Of a stretch of DNA of 64,000 bases, positions 2,714 to 54,447 are shown one piece after another. The DNA is taken from NCBI RefSeq assembly GCF_964204865.1, contig NC_135263.1, positions 11,408,001-11,472,000 on the forward strand, read 5' to 3'. This DNA comes from Styela clava. Its lineage: Eukaryota. Position 1 is the stretch's first letter, and every line of letters starts with the position of its first letter. Both the position numbers and the translations under genes were made by a program. The notes beneath the pieces were generated by a model, which saw only the letters and a program-made list of their open reading frames with translations, made no database searches and was not told where the DNA came from.

Positions 2714-3844
2714 TTAGAATTCATCTGTGGATTCATCATCTTTACTATTTTGTTTTGGGAAATCATTAACATCTTCAAACATCTCTAGATCCTCAGCATC
2801 TTGTTTTTCAGAATCTGAATGCTAAAATTAAAGAAGAATTGACAATGCATATCAAAGTCTATATAACACAAATTCAATCAAGATGCATTTTGAAAATAAC
2901 AAAATATATAAAAAAAAATTCAATTAATTGGACAAATTTATCCGTTAAAAGTGTATTTACAACAGCGCATTTCTACAAGGATAAATTGAATAGTACAAAC
3001 AGATTCAGTTTCTGTTGGTCTGTTGCAAACCAGATTAATTTTTGTCTCACCTCGTCAGGTTTGTCGCTGGCTGTGTCATAACCATAACCAACAGCACTGT
3101 TTCTGTAAATGAACAACAATGGAAAAATTGGTAACAGCAATAAAAATGATAGGACAACAATTGAAAGAAAAGGTCGCCCGCTCAGAAACGTTGCAGGACA
3201 AAATAACAAATATAAAGAAACTATTTGATCACAAGAAAGGAGGATAACTTTTTATCCAATTACTACTGCTTCATCGGTTATAAGACGATGGGCCACTTAT
3301 GAGTAGCGGGTATTATAAGGTATTATGACAGGACGTAACCGACTAACGAATGACATAACTCGGACATTGCTGAATTCAGCAATCCTCCCAGTCATTACCA
3401 TGAGTATTACACAAAAAATCCGTCCATATACTAATGATGAATTGTAATCGTACTTATAAAAGTTGAAATATGCAAATTTTATCTTGACCCTAAATGATTG
3501 GCTTATATTGAGAATTTCATTTGTTTGCAAACATGGGAAAAAATATATCTATATATATATATAATATTGTTTTACATATGGCTTGATTGGAGTCTCTTAA
3601 GCTCGTTGCCCTCTTCCGTAATTTGGGTGCCGTGATTGACTATTTTTTCAGCCAAGTTTCCGATGGTCATCATCAATCTTTGGTAGCTCTGGATACTGCT
3701 TTTAAGTTTTGTAACTTCTTTCTCTTTTCCTTCATATTTTTCTTTGTACGGCGTTGGGCATCGTCTGCGTCGACCCCAAGAATTCCCAGTATCGAAAGCA
3801 AGAATTGACAGTAGGACTATTTGGATTAAAAATACGGAATTCAT
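2714..3844 (-). CDS. Cluster gene 1: secreted prepropeptide (142 aa), Lys/Glu coiled-coil subtype
   Basis: Exons 3844-3576, 3102-3051, 2821-2714, all GT-AG, phases 2 and 0. Signal MNSVFLIQIVLLSILAFDTGNS, then WGRRRRCPTPYKEKYEGKEKEVTKLK...SSHI NSAVGYGYDTASDKPDE HSDSEKQDAEDLEMFEDVNDFPKQNSKDDESTDEF*. A further donor (2708) and acceptor (tttttgcag, 2463) indicate a non-coding last exon. Confidence 0.85.
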
Positions 3845-6800
3845 TCTTGATGATTACGGTTTAAATTCTCTTATATTCTTGAAATATTCAAAAATACGTA
3901 TTAAAAAAAAACAGCAAAAAAAAATTTTCACAACAATTAGAGGAATATTGAAAGATTTTTAGTTTCCGCACTAGGTAAGAATAGCAGTAGTCGAGTAGAT
4001 TTGTCATTTAGAAAGGCAAATAAGGGATCAGTACACAAATATATGAGTACAAATAGCGTTATTGTTAGTTGGGAAAAAAATACCTAACAAGATGACTAAA
4101 TTATTAACGTATTTTGCTAACGATTCGGTAGTATTTCTATAATGAGATTCCACATCTTTAGGTTAAGGTAGTAGGTAAGTGATAATAGGGAAGGGCAATT
4201 GAATATCGCCAGGATCCCCGAATTTAAATGGGAATTCTCATCTGTATATCATCCTAATTATTCTACTAATTCTTAGAGTGTACTTGGGTTAAAAAATGGA
4301 TTGAGCAGAAATCGCCCTAGTCGTTAATGTGTTAGCTATAGGTAAAGTTGGGTGGGCTGTGATAATATAGTAAAATCACTCGAACACTCATATTCAAACA
4401 CGTAAACATTGCAGGTTACAAATCCTGGGGTGAAAGATAATATCAGCCACCTCACCCAGAACGTAATAAATGGGGTGTATAATACCGAACCCGGAAGTTC
4501 TTCTCATCCAAAACATACAAAAGTAGTATAATAACGCCCAAGATTCCAATCACAAATCTACTACTCCGCACCAGAAGACACAAACACCAATAAAATGGGA
4601 CAAGTTGCTACTGCCTAATTTATAGAGCTCTATGCTGTCGATTTAGGTATTCCACCAGAAGAATTCACCATATGTAATGAACAACTCATTGTTCATGCGA
4701 ATATACTTATTAAACTGAAAACACGCGAGGTCTTCAGATCCGGAATTTTGATCAAAACTCCTTTTCAAACTGTCACTTAAAAAACCCATAGGGTTCTGAA
4801 TACCAAACCGGAAGGTACATAAATGTGGATTCTGATCAACAATAGTAATGTCATAAAGATAAAATTCCCCTATTCATAACCTCCATATGCCAAATCTCAA
4901 ACGTTGAAATTCTAATGTTGGGTTTTAGGGATAAATTCGTTATTTTAAGTAAAATTTATAAAAATAATAAAAATTCTCCAAATTCATAAATTAGGTCGAT
5001 AAAGGGCCCGTTGTAATTATACAACAGATGCCAACCAAAAATATAATTGGATCGATGACACCAGATGCTAATTAGTATTCCAACCCGAATCGATAACCCT
5101 AACGGAATCGATATCACCATACGCGCATACGTATATAAGGTTTCAAGAGGATATTTGAAAGGTATTGAAGAAGTGAGGTATTGAAGAAGTCATGTATTGA
5201 GAGGTCTTGTATTAGGAGTCGAATCGTCTTGATAAGTGTCGTCTCGTTTCTCGATGTCGTCATGTCTTAACAATCTTCTGTATTCTGTGTCTACAACATT
5301 AAACTACATCAACAACATGTGCCTATATGCTACAATTTCTTAACCGGGCTAAAAGGTCACTTTTGGGAATTTCATTTTTTGTCTTGCTAATGTTAGTTAG
5401 TTGAGAGTTTTAAGTAGAAAATATGAGTTCACTACCTCCACTAACGTGAATTGAAATAGACTGATAATGCTTTTTACTTAACCATAGTCATTATAATGTT
5501 TCAAGTCGTCACTCAAGTAAAGAGGGTTGTTTTTCACGGAACTGTGAGTTCAAAAATTATCTTCATTTGATCACAACTGAAAGTCGTTCAATGATTTAAA
5601 TAAGAATAAATTAAACAAATATACATTCAACTCTGGCTCTGAGTCTGAGGGATCATAAAATTTTACTGAAACGTATGTCGCCCGAAACTTTTTTGGTTTT
5701 AGTTGATCAACATGACTCTGACATCCTTGTCCGAAACTTAGACTCTACCACACCGACTAAAAATCATTTTAAAAACCAAACAAAAACTGCAAAACATTCA
5801 ACTCTGGCTCTGAAGGATCATGAAATTTTACTAGACTGGATCAACTAGATTCTTACATCTTAGTCCTGTCAAAAATCGCTTGAAGACCATAGCTCACACT
5901 GACGTACTTGAAAGTGCGGATGACAATGTGTGATTGATTGTTTTTTGGTGGGTTACATTTGTGCCGTAGAAAAGTATAATTCACATCATTACTACAACGT
6001 GTCACACGAATTTTAAAGGGTTGGCGTTCGTTTCTTCAAGACCAAAGACGACCGAAATGTTGGATAAATCAAACTAAAACCAAATTGCGATTTACTTTAG
6101 TTTCGTCACGAAGCTTATTGTTTCTACTTTTGCTTTTGAAACACTGTAAATTTTGTTCATAAAATGTAAATTTTACGTCACACTTACGTGGCCCGCCAGC
6201 CTAGATGGGCAAAGTTTCAAGCCCCAGGTCCAAAGACCTTGCCCACCTTTGATCATTCTATACTATATGATCCGATGAACATGAAAATATTTTCTCGTCT
6301 TTACATAAGTATTTAGGCTACAATACAGAATATACTGTGAACAACTAACTCGGTCGGACGCCAATAAATATATTTTGGATAATGTCACTATAACATGGCG
6401 ATAAGATATTTTAGCTGATGTTCATTTCTTAAGCAAATCTTGAAGATGAAAATATACAAGCCCAAAATCAAAGTTTTCTAAACTCAATCTGGTACAAACT
6501 TAACTATTTAATCTGGCGTAACTTAGCTCAGTTTGAGTCGTATTAAAAAGCAGCCCCGTTATGCAGACATAAAAAAAATTCTGAATGTTTCTTGTTATAT
6601 TATTTATTATCATTAAGATGCACTAAAAATCAAATAAACAGTTTATACGTCGTTTTAAAATTTTGAAAAAAAATTATTTAACAAATCAGACGTAATTTCA
6701 TCATCTATCCGAGTAATATGTTGTCCTTAATCTTTCAATTTTTGTATTGAATTCTTTTAGTTGAGACAAATGTACGAATAATTTACTGCAAAAACAATTG

Positions 6801-7068
6801 AAATAAGTCAGTCATGTATTTAAAAATATCCCTCGATTATCTGGTAGCTTCAAAATTCTAGTTTTAATCAAGCTTAAGTTAGATTTTAAAAAATTTATAT
6901 ACAAATACAATTTACTCTATTATCTTTAAACTTTCAGGCAACAATCTATTTTTTACTCACTGACAATTCAACTCCAATACAATGTTATTTTATTTTTTAA
7001 ACACGCAAGAAGCAGCAATTAACTTGCATATTACCATGTTTAGAATTCATCATCTTCACTATTTGTTT

Positions 7069-8296
7069 CTAGAAATTATTAACATCTTCAAACATCTCTA
7101 GATTATCAGCATCTTGTTTTTCAGAATCAGGGTTCTAAATAAACAAGAATTTACAATGCATATCTCAGTCAATATACCACAAATTTAATCGCGGTGCGCA
7201 TGGTGCGTTATAAACATAACAAAATATATAAAAAAAAAAAGATTCAATTAATTGGATAAATTTATCCGTTCAAGTGTATTTGCAACGTGCTTTCCACAAC
7301 GATAAATTGAAAGGTACAATCAGTATTAGTCACCTCGGCAGGTTTGTCGTCGGCTGTGTCATTACCAATCGCACTGCTCCTGTTAAAATAAATAAACAAC
7401 AATGAAAAAAATGGTAACAGTAATAAAAATGAAGGAAGACAATGGGAAGAAAACGTCGATTGCTCAGAAACGTTGCAGGATAGAATAACAAATAAAAAGA
7501 AACTCCTTGATCACGAGAAAGAGCATATCTTTTTATCCGATCCACACAGCTTCATCGGTTATAGGACAATGGTGGGCTAACTACTTATGCGTAGGTGAAG
7601 TTATTATAACAGGACGGAACCGACCAACGAATGACATAACTTGGATGGACATTGATGATTTCAGCAATTCTCATGGTCATTACCAAAAGCATTACTAAAA
7701 AATAAGCTCACATACTAACGATGTAGCCACACTTTAATTAAATTGAAAGCCTCATTAAAATCCTGTAGTTGTTCAAAATTGAAATCTATTCAATTAGATA
7801 TGTTATATAGTTTTAACATCATGGAAAAATAAAAACACAATAGTAATTGATCCATGCTATGGTTATGTATCTTTTATCAAAATAAAAAATATAATATGTT
7901 CAAATAAAGAGGGTCATGTTGAGTTCAATTATAAAAGTATGCAAATTTTCATATTTACATTGAGAATTTTATTTTTTTGTAAACATGGAAAAGGAAAAAA
8001 TATGTATATATATAAGATTTTTTTTACGTATATCTTGAATGGAGGTTTTTAAGCTCGTTGCCCTCATTCGTAATCTGAGTGCCGTGATTAATTATTTTTT
8101 CAGCCAAGCTTCCCATGGTCATCATCAAGCTTTGGTAGCTCTGGATTCTCTTGTTTAGTTTTGTAACTTCTTTTTCTTTTGCTTCATATTTTTCCTTGAA
8201 CGGTTGTGCGCAACGTCTGCGTCGACTCCAGGAATTTCCAGTATCGAAAGCAAGAATTGCCAGTAAGACTATTTGGATTAAAAACACGGAATTCAT
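7069..8296 (-). CDS. Cluster gene 2: tandem paralog of gene 1 (126 aa; acidic tail shortened by an apparent 1-nt deletion)
   Basis: Exons 8296-8028, 7379-7334, 7134-7069 (GT-AG). MNSVFLIQIVLLAILAFDTGNS WSRRRRCAQPFKEKYEAKEKEV...HSRYT SSAIGNDTADDKPAE NPDSEKQDADNLEMFEDVNNF*. Aligns to gene 1 across exons, introns and flanks. Confidence 0.82.
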
Positions 8297-11276: not shown

Positions 11277-12544
11277 TTATTCTCTCTTCTTGCTTTCTTC
11301 TTTTTCTTTTTCTTCTCTTTCTTCATTTTCTTTAGCTTCAGCAGAATCGTTATCAAACATTTCCTGCTCATCGCTATCGTCTTCAAAGTTGTCTGCTGAG
11401 TCTTCGTCAATCTGTGGTGGAGAAGTGATTAATTGTACACAAATCATACATGCTTGTCTTAGATATCTAATCCGCAAAATAATACACATTTTGACATTTG
11501 CGAATAACAGCAACATGGTATAGATTTTAAATTGCCAATTGTAGGCTGTGTAATGTTGTTCGCTGTGTTGCGGAATCATAATAAAGCTAACACGCGAAAA
11601 ACTTTCACAAAGAAAAGAAATAATCAAAATCCAAAATTAAAAGTTTGAGGGTAGGACCCTAATAATAAAAATGACAAATATGTAATAATATAATATAATA
11701 TAATAAAAATGTCTACCTGGCGTTTAAATTATTATAATGAGAACAGCAAACAAACAATTTAATATTAAGGAAGAACTTTTCAAGTTTCGTATCAGTATCA
11801 GTAAATTTTTGCAAATACACGCCTTATCTTGCCTTGTTTGAACACTAAAATTCTCATAAATAAATAACATTATTTTGCTATATTTCAACATGGCTGCTGT
11901 AGTTCTATTTTGTCTTTTGCTATGACAAGCAAATAAAACTGTTAACTCACTTCTTCGTCATTTAGTATTTCATCGTCAAGTTCATCCTCATCTCCCCAAC
12001 GGCGTGCAATTTTTCTGCAAAATAAAAATAAGGGGGTTTATTTTTGGTGCTTAACCCAGAGAAAAAAGTTGTAAAAAGGGCTTAGAAGAATAGAACTCAT
12101 TCTCATTTCACGATGCTGGTCGCGGCTGTCTATTCAACAATGATCCAAATCTATTTAAAAAACAAAAAAAAATTTGACCTGAGCATAATAATGACATTAT
12201 TTTCAAAAATTAATATGCGACTTTTGCGATTAATTTTCAACCTACATGTTTGTGGTATGGTGTGCTAGCAACTCTCTTCCTATTTTAGTCACTGCTCCTC
12301 CATATTGTAACGCTCTGACCCCCAAACGGTGAATGTACGTGAGCAACTGTGTGTAATGTCTTTGAATGACACTGTATCTTTTTGCTTTCGCTCGATAACG
12401 GTTGAGAATACTATGGTAATGAGCCTTGTAATTGAGATGGCAGGAATGTCTACGACGGCGACGCCTTCTTCGCCACCAGGAGTCGCCACTTTCGAACGCG
12501 AGCATCGCCACAAGCGCCAACACAATCACTAACTTCATCTGCAT
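11277..12544 (-). CDS. Cluster gene 3: secreted cationic His/Tyr/Arg-rich prepropeptide (165 aa)
   Basis: Exons 12544-12246, 12014-11951, 11411-11277. MQMKLVIVLALVAMLAFESGDS WWRRRRRRRRHSCHLNYKAHY...HHTTNI KIARRW-G-DEDELDDEILNDEE IDEDSADNFEDD...KKRE*. Acceptor ctttcag 4 nt before the ATG. Donor 2 nt after the stop, next acceptor at 11028. Confidence 0.88.
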
Positions 12545-13682
12545 TTTTCTGAAAGTTAGAATTGAGGGTATTACTTTTTTGTATTTGTTATTTAATAAAA
12601 TGTATTTGCAGTATATTTGATTGAATAGTATCTATTCATTCAACTTGAAGTACGGAAGTTAGTACAAAATTTTACAGTAGGAATATTGGTCAGACACACA
12701 AAGAAAAATTTGTCAAACGCGTACTGAATGTTTTGTGTAATCTTATAAGTTTTCGTGACTTTTCGTTTAAATGTACAAATCAAAAACACAATTTTGATAA
12801 TCATTGGAAGCAGAATCGACGAAATTAGAATCGAATTCAAAATACTCTGATAATTTGCTTTAATAAAGCGAAGCAAAATAAAGTCTTGAACAAAGACAAG
12901 ATATGTGTAACGTTGAGCCACTGTATGTAGTAACTATATCTGATTTGATTTTCTTGGTCATAATGTATTTTACCCTAATCACTCTTTTTGATAACTTTCT
13001 TTTTACAACAAACATTATTGAACTCCGATTGCCAACGAGAAACTCGAACTGTTTATTTACAAACCTTGTATCCACCGACTTGCCCAATAATCGTCAATGC
13101 CAAAATCTTCCGTCTGTATTTTTAACCTTTGCAAGCATCGTATTATATAGAAGCCAGAATTGAGAATTTGCTTAATAAATTTGTCTTAAAAGCTGATTCC
13201 GACAATAGAATAATACACTATTATATTATTACTTTTATTGAAATTCAATTCGACGAGAATGAGGATATCCGTATATTAGAAAAATATGCAAAGATGAAAT
13301 CGTGGGTTCATGCTAAAGTCTATTATTAAGCAAAATTACTGATTGCCATATGGTAACTAGATTTCAAATAACCAATATGTACAAAGGCATATTCATATTT
13401 TTCATTACTGTCGGAAATTGTGCAAATGGTAGTTCAAATTTCAGACTAAGCAGAATTTTAATACAAAAAGATCGTTAAACATATTACCGTTTTTGAAGAA
13501 AGGTATGCTATGATCAGTCATTTAGTTTTGACATTCAATACATATTAGCATACTTTCATGATAATGATTCCGCTCAAACAAATATATATTCTGTGTTATT
13601 CTGTGAGTATGCCCTTCCTGATGGGTTAGCTAAGCACGGTAATTTTGTGTTGTGTCTATGTGTGAAATATGTTCGGCTACAC

Positions 13683-13990
13683 CAGGGGGGAGCAAGGTTT
13701 TAGAACTATGGGCCAAACATTTTGCTCGTCTAGATTGCCGGGCCATATAAGTGTGACCTATAAAGTTACATTTCATAAACAACGTATACAGTGTTACAAA
13801 AGCAAAAGTGGAAAACAACAAACCTCGTGCAAAAACTAAATCAATCGCAGTCCCAACAAACTTCTTGACCTATTTTTTAGATAAAACATCAAAATTTGGT
13901 TTTAGTTTGGTTGTGGCTGCATCAAGCGTGCCAGATTAAATTAACCAACGGGCCGGATTCGGCCCGCGGGCCGCAGTTTACCCATGTCAG
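13683..13990. mobile_element. hAT-type MITE
   Basis: Starts CAGGGGGGAGCAA; ends with ggcccgcgggccgcagtt and a degenerate TIR. Perfect 8-bp TSD GGCTACAC (13675-13682 / 13991-13998). Confidence 0.8.
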
Positions 13991-14789
13991 GGCTACACGC
14001 TAAACATCAGCGCTGAACTCGGCGCCAGGGCTTTCTGTCGGGCTTAAAGATAATAATTATTGAACACAAATTTTTATATCGTGACTTCGCGCAAGATGTG
14101 TTCCAGCTTTCCAATATCTTGCTGAGAGATTTACCGTTTACTTATTGGCAATGATAAGTTGGGGATCTTTAACTATTCGATATCATGCGGGCCAGTTCAT
14201 CTAAAACAGACGTTCTTGATGTACCAAATTAATTTCAGGAAAGGTCATATAGAATATAAATTTGGAAACAACAACGAAGCGTGATTTTCGGGAAGAGTTT
14301 GCGCAGAATCCACAGATCCAATTGAGTTGGAACATTGTGTTTGATAATATAACAAATTAGGCTTGGTACTTCTTTTCGGGTACTGATTAATCTATTCATT
14401 TCAGTGTTGTTGGACTTTAAAAATTCTAGGGATTTGCGCATAAACATTATATTTTGACGTACATTTTGCCTTAAAATTCATACATGTCGGGGGGAGTCGT
14501 GAACAATCGTCTTATTTTATAGATCGATTGATCACGTTTGATTTATTACGTGACAAAAGCGTTGTTGTCCAACAGATAATAATATTGAACATTTATTATT
14601 TATTAAAGATACTACAAACTTTAAAGTACCCTGAATAACCGAAGCAAAAATTATGCATTATATATAGTGTATTTCCAAATACATAAATAATAAAATGACA
14701 TTCTAAACTTTTATTCAAAAAAGCAAGATCGGGAAGGTTTGATTCGTTTATGTAACATTGTGTTCTGTCGGTCGATACTCTTCACTTTA

Positions 14790-16007
14790 CTAAACTTCCC
14801 GAACAAAATCTCCAGCTGAAAAAAAATAGAATATCTTCAATGGTAATGACGGTTACAATGGTAAAAAATTGATTTTGAACACAATACTGACCTACGAATC
14901 CTTTTTTTAAATTATTTTCGTTGTTGTAGTTAGGTTAAAAAAATGACTACTGAACCAATTAATCAAAATTATGGCAGTTAATAGGAAAGATAAAACTGTG
15001 GTGTTGTACAAAGTATTGTTAAAGTTTAAATCAGTAACATGCGATAGTTTCAAAATAAAAAATAAAAAAATATATCAAAGTTCCGGGGTGTGCCGAATAT
15101 TTCTAATTACAAATCTTTCAGTAAAGCCTATTTTTAAATTACTTACCATGTTGGGGAAGTCCATTTTCCTGTTTCTCTTCTTTTTCCTCGAACAGATGTT
15201 GATCGTCATTCTCTTCATTGAAGTTGTCTTCTATTGCGTCATTCTGTTTTAGAAAAATATATTTATTGAACATGTCGTCCGGAATGCAGCACTTGGTAGT
15301 TTTTGATGACCACTCTCCATGCAACTGGCCCTCACTTTTCACTCGTTATTTCAAGACAAATCAATTATATCAATGCTTCAAAAGTAGGATTAATGGAATT
15401 TTCTCAATTAAACATCGATATATGTGAATAGTTCTGCTGTAAAAATGAAACTTGACTGTTTATTTGCTTTTGTATATTTATAACTTAATTCACTCTCCCA
15501 AAACTTCTTTGTGTTTAAGTATTGAATTAATAATACCTCACTAAACTTACCATGTTGTCAGAAAACAAGTCATCATCAACTAAATCGTCATCTCCATAAT
15601 GATAGGCAATATGTCTGCAAAATAAAAATAATATAATCAATGAACACTATATTATATCAACAGCAAAAGTTTTATCTTAGGTAAGTGTTAAAACTTTCAT
15701 TAGTTACCACATACCTGTGCCTGGCATGTTGTGACAACAACTGTCTCCCGATTCCGGTCACGTAGCCACCATATCTAACAGCTTTCACTCCAACACCATG
15801 TACGTACGACACTAGAGCTTTATAGTTGGCTAGAACGACTCGGTATTTTGATTGCAACGCTCGGTACAATCTCAGAGTATTCAAATGATGAGATTTGTAC
15901 GCGTTGTAATAACGTCTACTTCTCCTCCGTCTCCTAGACCAGGATTCTCCAGATTCAAAAGCAAGAATTGCCACCAAACCCAACACAAGCAACAATTTTT
16001 TCTGCAT
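14790..16007 (-). CDS. Cluster gene 4: secreted cationic His/Tyr-rich prepropeptide (159 aa), no Cys
   Basis: Exons 16007-15715, 15614-15551, 15243-15147, 14815-14790 (phases 2,0,1; 480 nt open). MQKKLLLVLGLVAILAFESGES WSRRRRRSRRYYNAYKSHH...HARHR HIAYHY-G-DDDLVDDDLFSDNM NDAIEDNF...LPQH AGDFVREV*. The true start is the ATG at 16007, not the TTG used in the ORF track. Confidence 0.9.
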
Positions 16008-16515
16008 TTTCACTGAAAGCAAAAATCAAAAAATATTGTATTATTCTGGTAGAGATATGATCAGGTAAAGCTGTGATTACGGTGATTCGATTTGCCGAAC
16101 AATGCTTTGCTGTACCGTGCATGTTCACCATGTATGTTCTGTCTAAGATTAGTAAATATCATGGATTATCAACGAAAACCTTCAACACAAAAAATAGCAT
16201 CATTACCCACTTAAAATAGGAAAAATTGGTCTACGGCGTCTTCGGTATGAAAATTTAGAAGTGGCCAAAAATGCGCAAAAATGTGGAAATATTTGGTGAT
16301 AATTTCAATAATACAAATAATAATAATAATACAATAATACAATAATTCAACAATACAAATTCAATAATACAGAGTTTTTATAAACCATTGGTAAAAATAG
16401 TAAGATGGTTTTTGGATCGGCATCGGCAATGGTAAAATTTATTTCGTTTTAAAATTGAAATTGAGCGAGTCGCTGTAGGTTTGATGCAACTCTGTATTCT
16501 CACCCTCTACTCACC

Positions 16516-19955: not shown

Positions 19956-20855
19956 TTATTCTTCCAAATTCTTCACAATTTGATCAACTTGATCGGCATC
20001 TTCAGCTTAAAATAAAATGAGCAAAATGAATTATTTTTACATAAAAAAAAATAATAAAAATTGGAATAGAAATTATTTATTTTCCTTGTACGTCCTTTAT
20101 AGTACATACCTTCAATGTCATCAATATATTCAGGGAGAGCTGCCACAAGAGAATTCAAATCCATGTTCTACAAAGATAATGTGAGAGTAAATTTCCAATT
20201 ATAGAAGTTCGAGTATTTATTGGCATGATTATTTTAGGTAAAAGTCTATTTGTAAATCTAATGTGATGTCGTTTCAAAATTTACAAAAATCGTGTACAAT
20301 TTTTTGCTATATAAATTTATAAAGCAATATGCAGAAGCTAAGCTGATACCTTATTTAGCAGCATATCTTCATCTTCAAAAGCAGTGCGTCTGAAAATATC
20401 AGTCAATGAATTAATTTGAACACGATATTTGTGCCGGTAGTTACCAGTTAGGCACACTTTCTTGAGCCCTGTCGATCGCAAAGGCCCCACACGGTGTCGC
20501 AATTGTCGAAATGAGCTAAATATAGTACTGAACAGATGGTCCAGGGATCCACGCAAAGTTATTCTTATTGGCATCTTATGGAAAATATTCTCATCGACTA
20601 TTCCATTAAATACCAGTCAACCAACCTTTGTTTGGAAGGCAGAAGATGAGTTTGTTGGTTAAGTTTTTTCAGTGATCTCATCAATGAGTGGTATTCTTTC
20701 TTTATACGGTTGCGTTTCTTCAACAACGCCATATATCTTTGCCGCTCGTTTTTTGTAAGTCGGACTTGACCCTGGTGAATTGAATTACTCACGCTTGCTT
20801 TACTCGCAACAACGGCAAAGATGACAACAAGGGCAAGGGCAATCACAAACTTCAT
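19956..20855 (-). CDS. Cluster gene 5: highly diverged member (125 aa): signal, Lys/Arg-rich helix, acidic tail
   Basis: Exons 20855-20626, 20389-20350, 20167-20110, 20005-19956 (phases 2,0,1; 378 nt open). MKFVIALALVVIFAVVASKA...RLTKNERQRYMALLKKRNRIKKEYHSLMRSLKKL...KQR RTAFEDEDMLLNK NMDLNSLVAALPEYIDDIE AEDADQVDQIVKNLEE*. Last-exon context ttttaag|CTGAAGA is the same as in gene 8. Confidence 0.82.
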
Positions 20856-25095: not shown

Positions 25096-26609
25096 ATGAA
25101 AGTGAGATTCTTGATTCTTTTGGCACTTGTGGCGATCCTCGCCTTTGACGGTGGAGATTCTTGGAGTAGACGTAGAAGAAGAAGAAGACGTTGTCCCCCT
25201 ACATATACATCACAGTACCGCTCAGTGCGGAAACTTTATACTGCTTTGTATACACGCCATGTTAGTGTATTGGGTAAATACAAAGGTTTGCTTGCATTCG
25301 TCCTTCGAGAGGGTAGAAATGCAAAGAGATACGGCTACCAGATGAAAGCTCTTGGACAAAAAATGATTGCTAAGTTCTACAGCTACAGGTGGAACAAATT
25401 TGACATCTTACTTCATTATTTGATGCTAAAATACATATAACAATACTTTTCTTACAACCATATCGCATGGTATTTTTGTAGCAATCATAAACAATGAAAC
25501 AAAGCTAATTCACTCCAGCTGTGTTAATATTGAAATCTTCCGAGCTGTGTCATTTTTATGATCCTATAGAATTACAATAAAAAAATGGCTAATTGCTATA
25601 GTTTGTAAGAAAGTCACTGTATATAGTGATGAACAAGAAGGCAATGCTCAAATATATGGACATGAAAGCCGAAACGAAGTAGTAGCGTAACCACCACCAT
25701 ATGATTGAGATGTTATCACGGAACCACAGCACTCAATTTTTATTTCACGTTTTAATTTCACGTTCATATAATCAAGTTTACTTTCTAAGCGTTTTTGTTT
25801 TCGGTGTATTTCTATGTGACTTTCGATTTTCTTTATAAATATTCTCTTATTCTTTTTACGATTATTTATTACATTTCAGGAAATATGCTTATGGGGATAT
25901 GGAATTTGAGGACGAACCTTTTATAGACGAGGTAGCAGCGAGTAATATGTTGAGTTTTATACTTTGTAGGATCTGAAGTTTAAATTAGCTAATTCCATTT
26001 ACCAATTGCTATATTTATATTTATCAAGTGTCTTCCCAATCATTATTACTGATTATTTTATCCAAATCTTTGGAAACCCAAATATTTAATATATTTCTAT
26101 TCGGTAATCTTCTATTACAAAAAGTTAAAATCCTACAAAGATGTTATATAAAAAAATACTAATACGTTTGTTTTTCCTCACTCAGAGCCATGATTTCGAC
26201 GATGATAATATCAGTGAACAAGTCAACGATGATCAGGACATGTTTCAGGATTCAGAAGATTTTTCTGAAAACGAGGACGAAGAAGAAGTCAAGCAACTAC
26301 CCGATGAAGGTAACAAACCAAATGAATATATAAAAATACAACCATCTTGAATTTTTTTTATCCTAATGAGACACTAAACTTTGCTGTCGATCGATCGTAA
26401 CAATTTGTACTACAAACGTTATGAGATGAGTGAAGAATTTAAACAAATATTAAATTGCACAATTCAATCTCAAATCCGATCGCGGAGTGCGCCCGGTCCT
26501 AACAAAATCATAAAATTATGATAAACAGGACCAATTAAATGACAATTTCTTTTTATATTAAGTGCAAGACACCGATTCAAACGTGATAGAATCTCATAAA
26601 AAAGAATAA
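25096..26609 (+). CDS. Cluster gene 6: secreted cationic Tyr/Arg/Lys-rich prepropeptide (171 aa)
   Basis: Exons 25096-25388, 25880-25931, 26186-26309, 26563-26609 (phases 2,0,1; 516 nt open). MKVRFLILLALVAILAFDGGDS WSRRRRRRRRCPPTYTSQY...FYSYR KYAY-G-DMEFEDEPFIDE SHDFDDD...LPDE VQDTDSNVIESHKKE*. Confidence 0.88.
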
Positions 26610-33960: not shown

Positions 33961-33972
33961 CTAAATAATAAT

Positions 33973-34354
33973 GCCTGCTAAAACGCTTAAAAACAGTGAA
34001 AAACCGTCAAAAAACACCCAGAACCCTGCTAAACGCTTAAAAACAGTGACCAACCGTCAAAAAACACCAAGAACCCTGCTAAAACGCTTAAAAACAGTGA
34101 AAAAACGTCAAAAAAACACCAAGAACCCTGCTAAAACGCCTAAAAACAGTGAAAACCCGTCAAAAAACACCAAGAATCCTGCTAAAACGCTTAAAAACAG
34201 TGAACAACCGTAAAAAAACACCAAGAACCCTGCTATAACCCTTAAAAACAGTGAAAAACCGTCAAAAAACACCAAGAACCCTGCTAAAACGCTTAAAAAC
34301 AGTGAAAGCCCGTCAAAAAACACCAAGAACCCTGCTAAAACGCTTAAAAACAGT
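33973..34354. repeat. 51-bp minisatellite, about 7.5 copies
   Basis: Unit aaccctgctaaaacgcttaaaaacagtgaaaaaccgtcaaaaaacaccaag; lies inside the CACTA element. Confidence 0.95.
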
Positions 34355-35517
34355 CAAATAATACAGTGTAAATTGTGAAATCGCCAAATACGTTCCGAAC
34401 AAGATGGCCGCCTTGTAGACTTTGTAGGTATAGTTGAATTCATCTGTCTGTTACCGGTACCGTACCTATTGTTGCCACTGACTTGTAACGTTTGAACGTA
34501 TCCTATCACCATAGGCTACCGGTAAGTTACATCTATTCCGAAACAAATACTGAAATAGCCAATTCAGATTTTTACTCTTGGTCGTCGATATATACCGGTA
34601 CCGGTAAGACGGCGAAACTAACGCAGTGTGTAAGCATGTCGCTGTATACAGGTAGGCTACGGTACCGGTACCATTAGATGCTGATGTACACGGTATTTAA
34701 AGAATATTTTGGTCTACCAACTACAAGTCTGCTACTGTAACACAAACATGCTCAATTAACGCATGAAAAGCTACAAAAACCAACCGCCTAAAATAAACAT
34801 CCACTAACGACAAAGAGCCTCGCTTACCGAGTCCTAATTCCTGAACCAGAAAAAGCGCGGGCTACAGGCACGTGACATTTGAGTGATGTCATAATTGGCA
34901 CATTACCGGTACTAAATGACCTATGACCGGAAAGAGAAGGATTAAAATATAGGACACTTTGATCTCTGCAAAAAGTACCAGTACCGGTACCTCAATATTC
35001 AGACCACTACCCGTGGTAAATTCGCAGCTACCGTACAGACCGTTGCTAACACAATCATCAAACTCAGACTCACGCTATTGCATACTTAACATACGTACCG
35101 CATTCAGTTTTCATACGCACGCAACCGATGCTGAGCTCCCAAACAGCTTAGCGTCCCAGCCGAGATGCGCGGCACAAGGAAACTCGAAATCAAAAATGCT
35201 GCGCACGCAACCTGCCCCGTGGAGTTTTTGCGGATGAATATTTGGACAAATAGGTCCGCTTACTTCCGGAAAAATAAGATATAAAACAATATCTTATCTT
35301 GTCTAATGCAATAGCAAAACAATCAGAATTTTTGGGTGATGAACCAAAATAATTCTAGAATAAAATTAATTCAAATTAATTTGATACCCAGAGCAAAATT
35401 TAGATGAAATTTTAAAGTATTTAAATTTGCTTCGTGACTATATCGCATGCGTAGGTAGATAAATTCGTTCATTGGAAAGAATAGTTACTCGTAAATTAGA
35501 GGAACTTAGATTTTTTT

Positions 35518-35872: not shown

Positions 35873-36998
35873 ATGAAAGCACGATTCTTGATTCTTTTGG
35901 CACTTGTGGCGATCCTCGCTTTTGACGGGGGGGATTCTTGGTTTAGTCGTAGACGACGAAGGCGTCACTGCGCACCATCATTCAAATCAAGCTACTACGC
36001 ACTACTGAGGCATTATCGTGCCATGTATAGACGCCACATTCACGTACTGCATATGTACAGAGGTTTGGTTTCATTCGTCCTTCGAGAGGGTAGAAATGCA
36101 ATGAAATACGGTAACGATGTGAGAAATCTTGGGCGAAAAATGATTGCTCAGTTCCACAAACACAGGTAAAAAAAATTTTCTAAGCCTGACGATTAGAAAA
36201 CCGTCAAAATATTTTTCCACCACAGGGCCGCATGATATTTTCGCAGCAATCAAGACCATCCTCCAGCTATGTTTTCAAGTTTTGTGAACCAATAAACATG
36301 CGAATAATGATGTTGTGCAGTCCCCATATATTTTGAAAAAATTATCATGAAATATACTAATACTACGTGTTTATATCCTTTATATAAATATTTATTACAT
36401 TACAGACAATATACTGGCGATATAGAATTTGAAGACAAAACTTTCATGGACGAGGTAATAGAGAAAATATGTTTTAGACTTATTAGGATTGAATTTAACT
36501 GTCAATTACTATATTTATATACATCTATATTACCAAAACTTTAATCGCAACAAGTATCTTACATAAAAAAATACGTTTATTCTTGCTATCTTAGAGCCAT
36601 GATTTTGACGATGAGAAGTTCGATGAACAAGATATCGATGATCAGGACATGTTCCAGGATTCAGAAGATTTTGAAAACGAAGACGAGGAAGAACTCAAAC
36701 AATTATCCGGTGAAGGTAACAAAACATTACCAACAAACCAATTAAACAATAAAATATTTTGAGCTTTTTGTCATCTCAATAGGACGATAGTATTTGAGGT
36801 AACATCACGATTTTTTTAAACAAAACTGATAAATTACATTGATTTTAAAAGTTAGATTTATTTGCATTATTCAAACTCAAACTGGATCAGGCCCGATCCT
36901 AATTATAAACCCAAGGCTCTTTTAGAATATTATTTATTTTTTATTATTAAGTGGAAGACACCGATCAAAACATCCACGAGACTCAACAAAGAGAATAA
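35873..36998 (+). CDS. Cluster gene 7: paralog of gene 6 (169 aa)
   Basis: Exons 35873-36165, 36406-36454, 36595-36715, 36952-36998 (510 nt open). MKARFLILLALVAILAFDGGDS WFSRRRRRRHCAPSFKSSYY...FHKHR QYT-G-DIEFEDKTFMDE SHDFDDEKF...LSGE VEDTDQNIHETQQRE*. Confidence 0.9.
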
Positions 36999-40224: not shown

Positions 40225-43200
40225 TCACCCCATGTGATTCTTGTATATACCCGAACATGATAAATATTGATTTGATCATTTGTTCTTTGTTGTTGGTATT
40301 TTCAGTTCATGGAAATCAGACAGAAGAGAACATGAACCAAAAATGGATAACTGAATCATTCGTGAAAATGACCACGCCTACCATATCTTGTGTTGGGGGC
40401 TTGGGGCAGGCATATAAGTGAGTACAATCCTATGGGATACAAAATGCACAACAGGTCCCAATAGCCCATTGCAAGTCATGTAGTATACAAAATAAAGCGT
40501 GACATTTGACATTTTACCACACGGAAGCGGAACTGATTACATAACCTTTCGCTTAAAATGTCTTATCCGTGCAATAATGTGTTTCTGTATCCTGCACAAA
40601 TGTCACTAAATGAGGGAGGAAAATGATAAATGAGGGAGGAGCACACTCTCTGTGGTCTCACCCCATGTGATTCTTGTATATATAGCTACTAACCCCCAAA
40701 GGTACCCCATTTCATGTTGAAATCATCATGACAAAGTTAATTTTTCCCAAAATTCGAACAAAGACTTTCGTAGGAATCAAATTACACCAGGTTTAGGAAC
40801 ATAACAGGTTCCATCCAGTCATTATCAAATTAAAATCTATATTCTCAAGACCTTTGGCACTGATTGAAATAATTATATCTAAGTTCCCATCCGTACGATG
40901 TACATAATTACCCTTGTTGAGATAATAGGAATTTCTGTTTATAACGTGAATCACGAGCTCACGTTTACAGTATTTAATAAGGTTTATGATCAACGTATAA
41001 ATACGACTCCGATATCTTTCGATAAGGAGAGAGAAGACGATGTAAACCATTCAAAGCGAGTGTGGATAAGTGTTTTAAGATTTGTATTCTGTGTGTTGTG
41101 GAAATTTACAAATAAAAACATATAGAGATTTTTAACGCATCTTCATTCACGTGAAGCTGAAGGGTGAACGGGTGACTTGCAAGTCAGAGACAATCTACGA
41201 AATAGCAATATACGGTAACATCACATTCATCTAACAATCATTTATGCTATATATATACCCAAACATGATAAATATTGATTTGATCATTTGTTCTTTGTTG
41301 TTGGTATTTTCAGTTTATGGGAATCAAACAGAAAAGAACATGAATCAAAAATGGATAAATGACTCATTCGTGAAAATGGCCACGCCTACCATATCTTGTG
41401 TTGGGGGCTTGGGGCGGGAATATAAGTGAGTACAATCCTACCTTGCTGGGCTACAAAATGCACAACAGGTTCACGTCGAAGACGAGTCGATAATTGAGCA
41501 ATTTCCGGCACATCAATAAGGTCGATATTTTGCAAGTATGGTCTATAGATAAGTTATAGAACTCGCTAAAAATTATTCGTGTTTTTATGCTAGGTAATAT
41601 TACACCATATTGCAACAGTACAACTTAACCGAAATACCGGTAGGTGCTCGCCACTAATACAGTCTAGTAATACTGTAATAATTAGTTCAGAAGATCCAAG
41701 GTGCTGCAGAGACACACAAATAGGTTCGAAGTTCACGATGCAAACGAAGAGACTTTATTAAAATAGTGTAAAATCCACGCTCAAAGCAGATAAAATAAGA
41801 GCGACAAAATACGGTCATTACCAAGCGACAGCAGAAGCAAGAAGAGTGACACTGCGAATCCGCAGCAACGGTTCACATATGCAGTGGTGGTTGGAGTCGA
41901 GTAACTGAAACCAACTGTCCGGCAAATTAGGGCTCAGACTCCACACACCAATGCCTATGCAATACCTAGACACTAAATATAAATAAAATACAAAATAATA
42001 AAAAATAGGACAATTCCAGTCCCGCCACAATATCATGGTTGCGTACATTCTGAGAATCCTACATAAAATTCTTCAACTTACCCTTCATGAGGTAAATGGC
42101 AGAATACTACCAAACAGTCTACCGGCAACGACCCAATAGCCCATTGCAAGTCATATAGTATACAAAATAAAGCATGACATTTGACATTTTACCACACGGA
42201 AGCGGAACTGATTACATAACCTTTCGCTTAAAATGTCTTATCCGTGCAATTATGTGTTTCTGTATCCTGCACAAATGTCACTAAATGATAAATGAGGGAT
42301 GAGCACACTCTCTGTGGTCTCACCCGATGTGATTCTTGTATATACCCAAACATGATAAATATTGATTCGATCATTTGTTCTTTGTTATTGATATTTTCAG
42401 TTTATGAAAATCAAACAAAAAAGAGCATGTCCAAAAATGGATAAATGACTCATTCGTGAAATTGACCACGCCTACCATATCTTGTGTTGGGGGCTTGGGG
42501 CAGGCATATAAGTGAGTACAATCCTACCTTGGTGTGATACAAAATACACAACAGGTTCACGTCAAAGACGAGCCCATAATTGAGCAATTTCTCGCACAAC
42601 AGTAAGGTCGATATTTTGCAAGTAAGGTCTATAGATGAGTTATAGAACTCGCTAAAAAATATTAGTTTTTTTATGCTAGGTAATATTACACCATATCGGG
42701 GTTACGTACATTCTGAGAATCTTACATAAAACTCTTCATATTATCCTTCATGAGGTAAATGGCAGAATACTACCAAACAGTCTACCGGCAACGACCCAAT
42801 AGCTCATTGCAAGTCATATAGTATACCAAATAAAGCATGACATTTGACATTTCACCACACGGAAGCGGAACTGATTATATAACCTTTCGCTTAAAATGTC
42901 TTATCCGGGCAATAATGTGTTTCTGTATCCTGCACAAATGTCACTAAAAACATTGTTAAAGTATAAATTAGTCAAGAAGTTGAACCTCTAAACTGCAAAC
43001 TACAAATCATTTTGTACGGCACGCAATGGGAGGTTTGCCCATTCGTTTTTTTTATGCTAGGTCATATTACACCATATCGTAGTTGCGTACATTCTGAGAA
43101 TCTTACATAAAACTCTTCATATTACCCATCATGAGGTAAATGGCAGAATACTACCAAACAGTCTACCGGCAACGACCCAATAGCTCATTGCAAGTCATAT

Positions 43201-43420
43201 AGTATACAAATAAAGCATGACATTTGACATTTCACCACACGGAAGCGGAACTGATTACATAACATTTCGCTTGAAATGTCTTATCCGTGCAATAATGTGT
43301 TACTGTATCCTGCAAAAATGTCACTAAAAACATTGCTAAAAGTATAAATTAATCAAGAAGTTGAACCTCTAAACTGCAAACTACAAATCATTTTGTACGG
43401 CACGCAATGGGAGGTTTGCC
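40225..43420 (+). repeat. Multiplied upstream modules of gene 8 (putative promoter/first-exon block x3, downstream block x4)
   Basis: gttgggggcttggggc..TATAAGTGAG block at 40413, 41421 and 42507; one copy at gene 9 (51726). cccaatagc.cattgcaagtc...gtcactaaa block at about 40457, 42132, 42795 and 43176; one copy at gene 9 (about 52335). Confidence 0.85.
41611..42029 (-). mobile_element. Probable solo LTR (419 bp)
   Basis: TG...CA ends and a 4-bp TSD ATAT. The empty site (acaccatatcg...gtacattctgag) is visible at about 42690 and 43070. AATAAA on the minus strand near 41755. Confidence 0.7.
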
Positions 43421-44105
43421 CATTTTTACTGGCGCGTAATAATATAGCAACCATTCGGTATATGGTTTCAGTATGCATTAGCATTTAGTGGTTGTACTTG
43501 AATTTACTACCGATTGAGTATACAGCACCTTGCGATGAGCAAGTTCTCATAAAATAAATTATTATCCATATCTACCTGTAGGAAATGCTTATCATAAAAA
43601 TGTGAAACGAGTGAATCAAATAGGATTTTACACCCGTTTCATATACTATAACAATATGAAGGTTTTTACTGGCGCGGTGAGAGTGCCAATGTGACAAAGT
43701 TGCTCTTTTTAATTAAGCATTTTTAATGAGAATTAAAATTAGATTTTTAGTAATGTGAATTTGGTAACGCGTATTAAGCATTTTTAATGAGAATCATAAA
43801 TAGATTATAGTAATGTGAATTTGGTATCGTGCTTTTATTTCAATTCTTAAAAGACCATACGATTAAAGCACTCGTGTACTGAATATTTCAACATACAGAG
43901 ATTGGCATTACTTGCACACACGCAATCTCGCCAGTCAGGTTATATTACGCTATGAACAGCCCATCCTGACAAGTTCATGTGAATTTAAACACACTCCAAA
44001 AGAAGCACTTTGAAAAGGACACAATATCACTATTGTTGGCTAAATTTCTTATCAGCTTTTTACAAGGTGAATTCTATTTTTTAGATTGTGTAATATCGAA
44101 CAAAT

Positions 44106-45516
44106 ATGCAAACCAAATTGTTGATTGTTCTTGGTCTTGTGGCGATTCTTGCCTTTGAATGTGGTGATTCCTTTTGGAGAAGAAGGCATTACAGAAGAAG
44201 ACATCACTGTTCCTACTCCTACAAGGCTCACTACTATTCCATCCTGAGGCACTATCATACTGTCAACTCAAGATACCACGTCATCTTGAGGAATTACAGG
44301 ATCCTTGTCAATTACATACATCACGTTGGCGTCAAAGCACTCCGATACGGAGGCCACGTGACTGCCATAGGAAGACAACTTCTTCATCAGTATTCCAGAC
44401 ACCAGTAAGCAATCCCCGATCAATATTAGTGTGTTTAATATGAAAATAGACGGCGCTTTTAACAATTAAAGTCTTTGTGCCGAACAATATTAGTGGCACA
44501 CAGATTAATGTCGAGATGCCAAGGATAAAAAGTTTAATTTCTAGAATTAAAAAAAGTTTGTAATACCCTCTTTTCTACAATTTAGGAATGAAAATTCTAT
44601 ACTGTTTGTGCTATCTTCTACCCCAAAATTAAAAACTGTATTTTAATTGAATTTTCGGAATTTTTATCTAATAATCACCCCGCCTAACGTTCTCAAAATA
44701 AGATCGTATTTTTCGGTTTTATGTATATTTGCCAAAATAAGTAGCCCTCTTTGACGTGTGTAGCTGAATGAACGTAATTTTGCACCAACTACTAGATTCT
44801 AAGTATTACGAAATGCGTTGATTGAGGATTGTTATATATTCCGAGCCAATAAAATTTGAAAATTTATCATATTTCAGCCATATATCTCATGTCTACGGAG
44901 ATGAAGAAGATATCGAAGAGAGTGATCTTTTTGCCGAAAAAGATGTTCGTAAATTTATTTTTATTTGAATAAAATTTGGAAGTCATTTACCGTTTCAAAT
45001 AAATCGAAATATGCCAACTTTGATCTCATGTTTTAAATTATTGACAACAAAATCAAGATGTGACGTTATATTCACGATAACCACCATAATGATGTCAAAT
45101 ATCTTTAACTTTAACCACAATGCTTTACTACTTGCATTCAAAAGAATGCTCACTATATATATGTCCGAGAAGAACGAGTATTGATATATATAAAATATCA
45201 TTGTACGTTAAGAATATTCGAACTGATAAAAATAAATAATATTGATCTTACATAAACTTTATCAACAGAATGATAGTTTCGAACAAGAATTTGATGACCA
45301 GAACGATGATCGGGATATGGTCGAAGACTCTGAAGATATGAGTGAAAACGAAAATGAAGAAGACCTGAAGGAACTCCCCGAAAAAGGTGAACATATTTAA
45401 GTTGTGTTACTTGTGTTGTAAAAGGATTGATGATTGTTGTTAAGCCTTTGATTTGAATGATTTTCTTATTTTAAGCTGAAGACGTCAACAAGGATCATAA
45501 TCTCAACGACAAATAG
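44106..45516 (+). CDS. Cluster gene 8: His/Tyr-rich, clavanin-reminiscent prepropeptide (174 aa)
   Basis: Exons 44106-44404, 44878-44944, 45269-45386, 45476-45516 (525 nt open). MQTKLLIVLGLVAILAFECGDS FWRRRHYRRRHHCSYSYKAHYY...YIHHVGVKALRYGG...YSRHH HISHVY-G-DEEDIEESDLFAEKD NDSFEQEF...LPEK AEDVNKDHNLNDK*. Confidence 0.9.
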
Positions 45517-51932: not shown

Positions 51933-52263
51933 TAGGAAGTCCTCGACTTACGACGTTGTTCCGTTTTTGAGAAGCGGTGTAAGTTGGAACATTATACTGT
52001 ACAGTACATAAATTACTCTATAGGCCTACATATCGTACTGTTTTGTAAAGTATGGTACAGTAATAAAATGTACAAATAATGCAAAAAGTAGGCGATGTAA
52101 AATACGAAAACCAATGAGCCCAACGCACTGATTTTCTTGATCACAGTGATCCAGTTTAAGGGCTTAGATATTACAGTACAGTAATATCTTTTATATTTTT
52201 TGGAGTGCGTTAGTAACCTCGAAACAGCGCAAGTCGCGACCGTCGTAACCCGAGGACTCCCTG
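51933..52263. mobile_element. Tc1/mariner (Tigger/pogo-like) MITE
   Basis: Degenerate TIRs TAGGAAGTCCTCGACTTACGAC / GTCGTAACCCGAGGACTCCCTG. It interrupts gagaatctta-ca-taaaactc, which is intact in the paralogous copies at about 42715 and 43096. Confidence 0.8.
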
Positions 52264-53081
52264 AATAAAACTCTTCATATTACCCTTCATGAAGTAAATG
52301 GCAGAATACTACCAAACAATCTACCGCCAACGACCCAATAGCTCATTGCAAGTCATATAGTATACAAAATAAAGCATGACATTTGACATTTTACCACACG
52401 GAAGCGGACCTGATCACATAACCTTTCGCTTGAAATGTCTTATCCGTGCAATAATGTGTTTCTGTATCCTGCACAAATGTCACTAAAAACATTGCTAAAA
52501 GTATAAATTAGTCTGAAACTTGAACCTCTCAACTGCAAACTACAAATCATTTTGTACGGCACGCAATGGCAGGTTCGCCAAATTTTACTGGCGCGTAATA
52601 ATATTGAATCAAATAGGATATTGCACCCGTTTCACATTCTAGCTTTTCTTGGCGCGGTGAGAGTGCCAAGGTGACAAAGTTGCTCTTTTTAAGCATTTTT
52701 AATGAGAACCAAAATTAGATTTTTAGTAATGTGAATTTGGTATCGCGTATTATGCATTTTTAATGAGAATCATAAATAGATTATTGTAATGTGAATTTGG
52801 TATCGTGCTTTTATTTCAATTCCTAAAAGACCATCCGATTAAAGCACTCGTGTACTGAATATTTCAACATACAGACATTGGCAACACTTGCACACACGCA
52901 ATCTCGCCAGTCAGGTTCTATCACGCTATGAACGGCCCATCTTGACAAGCTCATATGAATTCCAAAACACTCCAAAAGATGCACTTTAGAAAGGACACAC
53001 ATATCACCATCGTTGGGTACAGTGCTCATCAGCTTTTTACAAGATAAATTATATTTTTAGATTGTGTAATATCGAACAAAT

Positions 53082-54447
53082 ATGCAAACCAAATTGTTGA
53101 TTGTTCTTGGTCTTGTGGCGATTCTTGCCTTTGAGGGTGGTGACTCCTTTTGGAGAAGAAGGCGTCGTAGAAGAAGACATCACTGTTCCTACCCGTACAA
53201 GGCTCACTACTATTCCACCCTGAGGCACTACCGTACTGTCAGCTCAAGGTACCACGTCATCTTGAGGCATTACAGGATACTTGTTAATTACATACATCAC
53301 GTTGGCGTCAAAGCACTCAGATACGGAGGCCACGTGACTTCTATAGGAAGACAACTTCTTCATCAGTATTCCAGACACCAGTAAGCAATACCCGAACAAT
53401 ATTAGTATATATGTGTAATATGGCAATTTAATAATTATAGTCTTTTCGACCAAGAATGAAGAGTTTCGTTACTAGAATTTAAAAAAGTTTGTAATACCAT
53501 CATTTCTACAATTTAGAAATGAAAATTCCATACTGTTTGTTCTCTCTTCTACCCCAAAATTAAAAACTGTTTTTGAATTAAATTTTCGGAATTTCTATCT
53601 GGTAATCACCCAGACTAACGTTCTCAAAATAAGATCGTATTTTTCAGTTTTATATATATTTGGAAAATGAGTTGCCCTCTTTGGCGTGTGTAGCTGAATG
53701 AACGTAATTTTGCACCAACTACTAGATTCTAAGTATTACGAAATGCGTTGATTGAGGATTGTTATATATTCCGAGCCAATAAAATTTGAAAATTTATCAT
53801 ATTTCAGCCATATATCTCATGTCTACGGAGATGAAGAAGATATCGAAGAGAGTGATCTTTTTGCCGAAAAAGATGTTCGTAAATTTATTTTTATTTGAAT
53901 AAAATTTGGAAATCAGTTATCGTTTCAAATAAATCGAAATAGGCCAACTTTGATCTCATGTTTGCCTAGTTTTAAGTTACTGACAACAAAATCAAGATGT
54001 AACGTTATATTCACCATAATGATGTCAAATATCTTTTACTTTAAACTTTAATCACAATACTTTACTACTTGAGTTCAAAAGAATGTGCTTACTATATATG
54101 CCGAGTAGAACAAGTAATGATATAAAATATCATTGTACGTTAAGAATAATCGAACTTATTAAAATAAATATTATTGATCTTACATAAACTTTATTAACAG
54201 AATGATAGTTTCGAACAAGAATTTGATGACCTGAACGATGATCAGGATATGTTCGAAGACTCTGAAGATACGAGTGAAAACGAAAATGAAGAAGTCCTGA
54301 AGGAACTCCCCGAAAAAGGTGAACATATTTAAGTTGTGTTACTCGTGTTGTAAAAGGTTTGATGATTGTTCTTAAGACTTTGATTTAAATGATTTCTTAT
54401 TTCAAGCTGAAGACGTCAACAAGGATCATAATCTCAACGACGAATAG
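53082..54447 (+). CDS. Cluster gene 9: recent paralog of gene 8 (174 aa)
   Basis: Exons 53082-53380, 53808-53874, 54201-54318, 54407-54447, the same lengths as gene 8. Nine amino-acid differences in exon 1; exon 2 is identical. Confidence 0.9.

Follow-up and report, generated by a model that had tools for sequence, protein, structure and literature searches.

Does a cluster of short, intron-split genes in Styela clava encode host-defence peptides, or secreted proteins with another role? No invertebrates are more closely related to vertebrates than the tunicates, and the clavanins and styelins, which come from S. clava, serve as templates for peptide antibiotics. The locus lies in C18:11,408,001–11,472,000, an AT-rich stretch (31–39% GC) of 64,000 nucleotides (nt) hereafter called the window. 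Nine paralogues are found in it, g1–g5 on the minus strand and g6–g9 on the plus strand, whose first exons are open over 76–100 codons, each starting with a hydrophobic signal-like sequence. On sequence comparison, the cluster is a tandemly duplicated, lineage-restricted S. clava family of genes for predicted secreted prepropeptides, and this family is an uncharacterised branch of a larger candidate host-defence peptide family.

Gene models, transcripts and extent of the cluster

A first-pass annotation of the window had placed nine spliced genes between positions 2714 and 54447. These outer positions fall on the stop codons that close g1 and g9, and GT/AG-bordered exons were found for all nine genes, with phases 2, 0, 1 where the introns exist: g4–g9 comprise four coding exons (intron phases 2, 0, 1) and g1–g3 comprise three (phases 2, 0). 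Downstream exons were placed from the GT/AG borders and similarity to RefSeq proteins; g1, g2, g5, g8 and g9 were analysed exon by exon, while g3, g4, g6 and g7 are represented by RefSeq proteins (P0001–P0005 below denote RefSeq proteins). The gene models, in window positions, are:

2714–3844, minus strand: gene 1 (g1/g2 subtype, K/E-rich domain); coding exons 3844–3576, 3102–3051, 2821–2714; based on the open reading frame (ORF), a phase-2 donor and exon 3, with exon 2 placed via DNA similarity to g2; related to P0005
7069–8296, minus strand: gene 2; coding exons 8296–8028, 7379–7334, 7134–7069; C-terminal end agrees with P0005 (..EDVNNF)
11277–13093, minus strand: gene 3 (LOC120341236); coding exons 12544–12246, 12014–11951, 11411–11277; 5′ untranslated region (UTR) exon start ~13065; exon 1 identical to P0003, tail exons a 90–95% match
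14654–16014, minus strand: gene 4; coding exons 16007–15715, 15614–15551, 15243–15147, 14815–14790; 3′ UTR to ~14654
19956–20855, minus strand: gene 5 (divergent); coding exons 20855–20626, 20389–20350, 20167–20110, 20005–19956; read from the sequence
25096–26609, plus strand: gene 6 (LOC120341295); coding exons 25096–25388, 25880–25931, 26186–26309, 26563–26609; P0001 maps exon by exon
35873–36998, plus strand: gene 7 (LOC120341446); coding exons 35873–36165, 36406–36454, 36595–36715, 36952–36998; P0002 maps exon by exon
44106–45516, plus strand: gene 8; coding exons 44106–44404, 44878–44944, 45269–45386, 45476–45516; from the ORF and similarity
53082–54447, plus strand: gene 9; coding exons 53082–53380, 53808–53874, 54201–54318, 54407–54447; read from the sequence, tail exons matching P0001, P0002 and P0004

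The short exons had been expected to make these genes easy for gene finders to miss. This is not so, as at least five of them are already RefSeq LOC models, entered as "uncharacterized protein": LOC120341236 (g3), LOC120341431 (a g4 variant), LOC120341095 (a g1/g2-type copy), LOC120341295 (g6), and LOC120341446 (g7). P0001, P0002 and P0003 reproduce our models of g6, g7 and g3, respectively, and P0004 is a variant of g4 with a shorter Arg run. In a word-index protein search, the window proteins returned RefSeq LOC proteins only, with exon 1 of g6 and g7 each 98% identical to the LOC120341295 and LOC120341446 products (both 169 amino acids (a.a)). The first exons of g8 and g9 share 91% identity with each other. 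Gene 5 lacks the ILAF motif, Arg run, and G-D junction described below; however, given that its exon plan, its phases (2, 0, 1) and the "AED" start of the last exon are all kept, we regard it as a true but divergent paralogue.

Transcript evidence was found for two of the genes, where RNA contigs carry the exact spliced joints. In g3, these join 12014 to 12246 and 11411 to 11951, with a 5′ UTR intron joined from 12548 to 13065 (up to four runs, three independent studies); in g4, they join 15614 to 15715, 15243 to 15551, and 14815 to 15147 (runs X1, X2 and X5; two of three studies), and a single RNA contig of 677 nt covers the gene. All of the g3 and g4 joints are GT..AG on the minus strand, and exon depth exceeds intron depth by orders of magnitude. 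Contig depth, a poor measure of expression, was ~1e5 for g3 and near zero for g4 in run X1, and in the thousands for both in run X5, which suggests that expression of the two genes is very strong and sample-specific. The RNA contigs also display a 3-nt allelic difference at the exon 1/2 border of g3.

The cluster does not end at the window edge. Two further genes of the g1/g2 subtype lie 9–14 kb to the left of the window, at C18:11393465–11393734 (plus strand) and C18:11398818–11399084 (minus strand), one of which encodes P0005 (LOC120341095). With these two genes, the chromosomal cluster counts 11 members.

Architecture of the predicted precursors

The first exons of eight of the nine genes align over ~100 residues (all but g5). 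L15, A16, F17, G20 and S22 are invariant in this alignment and are followed by a Trp and 4–8 Arg, in agreement with the leader motif (I/M)LAF(D/E)xG(D/E/N)S, Trp, and Arg run that the first-pass annotation had described for eight genes. A signal peptide is predicted in all nine proteins, in the form M-x(2-4) followed by 13–16 hydrophobic residues, and the A-x-A-like sites ILA/F and GDS/W fit the −3/−1 rule by eye. The Arg run is written in mixed CGN/AGR codons and is therefore maintained as protein sequence, not as a DNA microsatellite. Its length varies between the window and RefSeq, with 8 Arg in g6 (25162–25200) against 6 in P0001, and SRRRRRSRR in g4 (15915–15950) against RRR in P0004. Directly after the run, a single Cys occurs in g1–g3 and g6–g9 (seven of the eight Arg-run genes), with none in g4.

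The domain that follows, up to a conserved Gly, is 66–74 a.a long, or 74–82 a.a with the Arg run included, close to the earlier estimate of ~70–85 a.a (domain and charge figures were measured on the RefSeq proteins). It is rich in Tyr, His and Arg, with a net charge of +11 to +14, 7–11 Tyr residues, as many as 8 His, and in most cases one Cys; Tyr makes up 10–16% and His up to 11% of its residues. The tail after the Gly in these cationic types spans 54–68 a.a with a net charge of −18 to −29. The description of the domain as cationic thus stands for most types, but not for the g1/g2 type, in which a K/E-rich domain is barely cationic at +2 and is followed by a 31-a.a tail of net −10. Given that the tail charge more than cancels the domain charge, the pro-protein is acidic overall, with a net charge of −5 to −15.

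Exon translations bear out the switch from basic to acidic at a G-D pair in the six genes for which it had been noted (g3, g4 and g6–g9), where the junction takes the form aromatic-Gly-Asp. The corresponding residues are G-Y-D in g1 and G-N-D in g2, and g5 has none. In seven aligned proteins, among them a relative from another species (see below), the aromatic-G-D junction is conserved and its Gly is invariant.

Several observations point to a helical domain. Hydrophobicity recurs with a period of 3.5–3.6 residues in each of the nine domains, seven of which beat shuffled sequences at ≤0.05. AlphaFold2 predicted long helices with a pLDDT (predicted local distance difference test) of 80–90 across the cationic domain, and placed a further helix in the acidic tail. 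In the P0003 model the helix is interrupted for two residues at a conserved YGG, whereas exon 1 of g9 was modelled as one 63-residue helix with no YGG break. A firm helix-turn-helix assignment was dropped on account of this difference and of a pTM (predicted template modelling score) of 0.34–0.38; given the low pTM in both models, a hairpin and an extended coiled coil are both possible. Tyr residues are set at heptad spacing (domain positions 10, 17, 24 and 31) in the g3 and g4 proteins, as measured on P0003 and P0004, and a similar spacing is seen by eye in g8 and g9.

Leader and domain differ in their rate of change. The ratio of nonsynonymous to synonymous substitution (dN/dS; Nei–Gojobori, exon 1, four closest pairs with small counts) was ~0.14 in the leader and 0.22–0.91 in the helical domain, the highest value being that of the g6/g7 pair, and the leader is thus under stronger constraint than the helical domain. 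A constrained leader joined to a fast-changing product is the usual pattern in families of antimicrobial peptides and toxins.

Relatives within and beyond Styela clava

Searches of named families and structures returned no match. Seven exon-1 proteins compared with Pfam showed nothing above noise, and Rfam and tRNA scans of the window found nothing. The P0003 model gave no Foldseek match in the PDB at E ≤ 0.001, only generic helical hairpins, and ESM Atlas gave no usable match. Six LOC numbers of the family were not found in any paper. That the window holds an expanded, undescribed family of secreted precursors, as had been proposed, agrees with these results, given that no paper or named family matches it.

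A HMMER profile of the eight exon-1 proteins, searched against 1.84 billion representatives, recovered only S. clava proteins together with two proteins termed P0006 and P0009. In P0006, a 163-a.a protein from a Logan transcript contig, an Arg8-Cys head precedes a long basic helix, which a Y-G-D junction separates from an acidic tail; the closest sequence to it in the S. clava genome is only 34% identical, indicating that it derives from a species other than S. clava. P0009 (LOC120342944), encoded on C3, matched the profile at E 7e-4 among the 1.84e9 proteins and displays the family leader with Ala replacing the Ser before Trp. After the leader comes a 40-a.a peptide of net charge +11, starting GGWF and containing FYKRHK, then F-G-D and an acidic tail. 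We take this cationic peptide (GWF...FYKRHK) to resemble the styelins. The P0009 gene comprises four coding exons with intron phases 2, 0, 1, as do window genes, and its third intron (L028, C3:16179277 region) apparently uses a GC donor (G/GCAAGT).

A profile search of the genome placed further family-like genes on three other chromosomes, the C3 loci scoring E 2.5e-8 to 1e-6:

C3:16.14–16.22 Mb: leader-bearing cluster of at least 10 genes
C3:7.75–7.78 Mb: leader-bearing group of four genes
C8: one leader-bearing gene
C2:24385037–24390100: g5-like pair (L018, L020) with no Arg run; the nearest relatives of g5 (exon 1 E 1e-8)

Typical cationic helical peptides are encoded in exon 1 of the C3, C2 and C8 genes, whose later exons are acidic. 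The C3 arrays (L011–L027) combine an xGDSW-polyArg leader with short cationic helical peptides and acidic exons, whereas in the C2 pair a signal like that of g5 is followed by a long helix rich in Tyr and Arg, an R-G-D-E-D junction, and acidic exons. One copy in the C3:7.75–7.78 Mb group (L027) carries two TGA stops. A word-index search with a styelin-like exon from C3 found nothing, and one with P0009 found only an unrelated abalone EF-hand protein. The leader, the four-exon plan and the phases are common to the window family and to styelin/botryllin-like poly-Arg precursor genes on other chromosomes.

The first-pass annotation had likened the family to clavanin and styelin precursors. Using a pattern from the published clavanin A sequence (PMC4904370), we located a clavanin gene at C1:10,574,7xx, in which the last exon reads ...KSEEEK, then a 23-a.a peptide ending SHVF, then G and DDQQ.... 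The Gly-Asp junction that had been cited for clavanin precursors was therefore seen in the gene itself, and an aromatic-Gly-Asp junction ahead of an acidic tail, along with a His-rich composition, is what clavanins and the window family have in common. However, "clavanin-type" does not hold as a statement of homology, as the clavanin leader (MKTTILILLILGLGI...) has neither the ILAF/GDSW motif nor an Arg run, the pro-piece at the N-terminus is acidic, the 23-a.a peptide is His/Phe-rich, the exon plan is another one, and the gene lies on another chromosome (C1). Two clavanin-type genes (L038–L040) lie ~36 kb apart at C1:10538359 and C1:10574749, with a signal exon that ends in phase 2 placed ~1.1 kb upstream of the peptide exon.

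Proteins g8 and g9 do carry IHHVG and SHVYGD in clavanin order, with BLASTP matches of 9–12 residues (E 0.019 and 0.002, single comparisons). A designation of these genes as clavanin homologues was rejected, as the leader and exon plan differ and the similarity extends over those 9–12 residues only; the likeness is a lead at the level of short motifs and not homology. The motif order leaves a small chance that the 23-residue clavanins descend from the g8/g9 type by internal deletion.

The layout of the window precursors is the one known from tunicate antimicrobial peptides, and the likeness to styelins held in part. Peptides of the styelin/botryllin type (styelins A–E in S. clava, botryllin in Botryllus schlosseri) are cationic, 32–37 a.a long, and share a conserved KHK motif (PMC9966394). 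The window family and these precursors agree in running from a signal through a cationic helix to Gly-Asp and a long polyanionic tail, at a precursor length of ~160 a.a compared to 158 a.a in botryllin; its leader (xGDSW-polyArg), four coding exons, and phases 2, 0, 1 also recur in the styelin-like P0009 gene and tie it to genes of this kind. What did not stand is the peptide itself: the window domain, at 66–74 a.a, is Tyr/His-rich, less amphipathic, and usually opens with a single Cys, and the KHK motif is absent from all nine window proteins (P0009 has KRHK). Canonical styelin precursors are 81 a.a long and are not known to have an Arg run. Approximate patterns of styelins C and D found no gene in the genome, and one match with three mismatches (L041) was rejected as chance.

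Two other groups of peptides invite comparison. Dicynthaurin and halocidin, from Halocynthia aurantium, are single-Cys dimeric tunicate peptides (PMC10608444). As in seven of the eight Arg-run proteins and in P0006, their cationic helical chain contains one Cys that has no partner within it; these two peptides are 15–30 a.a long and show no sequence similarity, and dimerisation in the window family would be an extrapolation from this parallel. Insect cecropins, which are helix-hinge-helix peptides with an amidated C-terminus, have a basic amphipathic helix, a conserved Gly-containing hinge for which YGG is a candidate counterpart, and possible Gly amidation in common with the family. However, the window domain is ~2x as long, the hinge is not in the g9 model, the acidic tail and poly-Arg leader set it apart, and there is no sequence relation.

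Possible roles and other features of the window

By analogy with known tunicate peptides, a host-defence role of the freed cationic helix is the best single reading of the family, and one we hold with slightly more belief than doubt. Botryllin, a styelin-like peptide of Botryllus schlosseri with a 158-a.a precursor, is produced by morula cells and is lethal to bacteria and yeast; the botryllin-containing granules of these cells also contain furin (PMC9966394). It is this parallel, together with the single-Cys dimeric tunicate peptides and the conserved aromatic-Gly-Asp junction, that leads us to favour a defence role. In such a scheme, removal of the signal peptide would be followed by a furin-type convertase cut at the Arg run, and the acidic tail would keep the cationic domain harmless in storage granules until its removal at the Gly-Asp junction, where the Gly may donate an amide, as it does in clavanins and styelins. 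The long cationic helix set free in this way, which may be dimerised by a disulfide at the single Cys and may have its Tyr converted to 3,4-dihydroxyphenylalanine (DOPA), would then act on microbial membranes or polyanions as a host-defence effector. There is a small chance that the family represents a structurally new class of host-defence effector in animals, in which a ~70-residue Tyr/His/Arg-rich helix, released from a charge-masked poly-Arg-leader precursor, would use its single N-terminal Cys and its Tyr/Gly heptads to pair up in a coiled coil or helical bundle linked by disulfides.

Several points weigh against a defence role. The putative mature domain is 2–3x longer than any known tunicate helical peptide, and its mean helical hydrophobic moment is 0.33–0.48 compared to 0.58 in the styelin-like P0009. 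Cationicity is not conserved family-wide, given the +2 of the g1/g2 type and a g5 with neither Arg run nor G-D. Since GDS/W fits the −3/−1 rule, the Arg run may be part of the mature product, with W-Arg(n) as its N-terminus. Finally, what ties the family to styelins and botryllin is the leader together with the gene plan and a resemblance in one peptide motif.

In the main rival reading, the genes would encode precursors of structural or adhesive proteins that are rich in Tyr and His and are made as DOPA proteins in morula cells. Oxidised by phenoloxidase, these would be cross-linked into the tunic, into wound plugs, or into extracellular traps, and the acidic tail would stop premature aggregation. 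We give it an appreciable minority chance. The composition of the domain (10–16% Tyr, up to 11% His, and a conserved Gly) is in keeping with such a role, as are the Tyr heptad spacing (measured in g3 and g4, by eye in g8 and g9), long helices suited to coiled-coil assembly, and the very high contig depth in some samples. Styelin D and ferreascidin are examples of the DOPA-bearing peptides and proteins of tunicate blood cells (PMC3039461), and styelins have been proposed as phenoloxidase substrates (PMC9966394). However, the leader and gene plan are common to genes for short cationic peptides, the products are small, and the helical domain evolves fast, which would be unusual in structural proteins. 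A cross-linking role could also coexist with defence, as proposed for styelins.

A slimmer chance attaches to the unprocessed zwitterionic protein being itself the functional unit, whether as granule-matrix or coacervate cargo or as a carrier buffering charged granule contents, with the basic helix and acidic tail pairing within or between molecules. The net charge of the pro-protein (−5 to −15), the helix that AlphaFold2 places in the acidic tail, and the retention of the full architecture in the near-neutral g1/g2 type are consistent with this. Against it, the Arg run and the aromatic-G-D junction are conserved and look like processing sites, and the known relatives of this layout are cleaved.

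The chance that these are precursors of signalling peptides (hormones, cytokine-like factors, or gamete/larval cues) freed by a convertase is very slight: the proteins do have a signal peptide, a poly-basic site, and a Gly that might serve for amidation, but such genes rarely expand to 11 fast-diverging tandem copies, no repeated short peptide units lie between dibasic sites, and a 70-a.a amphipathic helix with a charge-balancing tail would be atypical.

The cluster and its relatives on three other chromosomes suggest that S. clava secretes a far wider and more diverse set of cationic peptides than the few that were purified in the 1990s. The conserved leader offers a handle for mining other ascidians. 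The family also supplies unusually long Tyr/His-rich helical candidates in which candidate poly-Arg cleavage, Gly-Asp amidation, DOPA formation, and disulfide dimerisation are open to direct testing. Should the products instead be structural or granule-matrix proteins, the family would still explain very abundant transcripts with no assigned role.

Repeats also lie beside the genes in the window. Between g3 and g4 lies a dispersed repeat of ~182 bp (13760–13945), probably a SINE-like (short interspersed nuclear element) or MITE-like (miniature inverted-repeat transposable element) element, with 2,988 candidates in a first look at the genome and 39 other scored copies at 84–86% identity; numerous short RNA contigs, whose loose ends are unrelated, lie on it. 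A 381-bp direct duplication (42666–43424) lies upstream of g8. A 51-bp tandem repeat of 7.5 copies (33974–34358) is the source of a spurious 80-a.a ORF, "PAKTLKNSEKPSKNT". At the end of the window, a 95-bp satellite (62274–63736; 15.4 copies, 88% matches) coincides with strong GC and AT skew.

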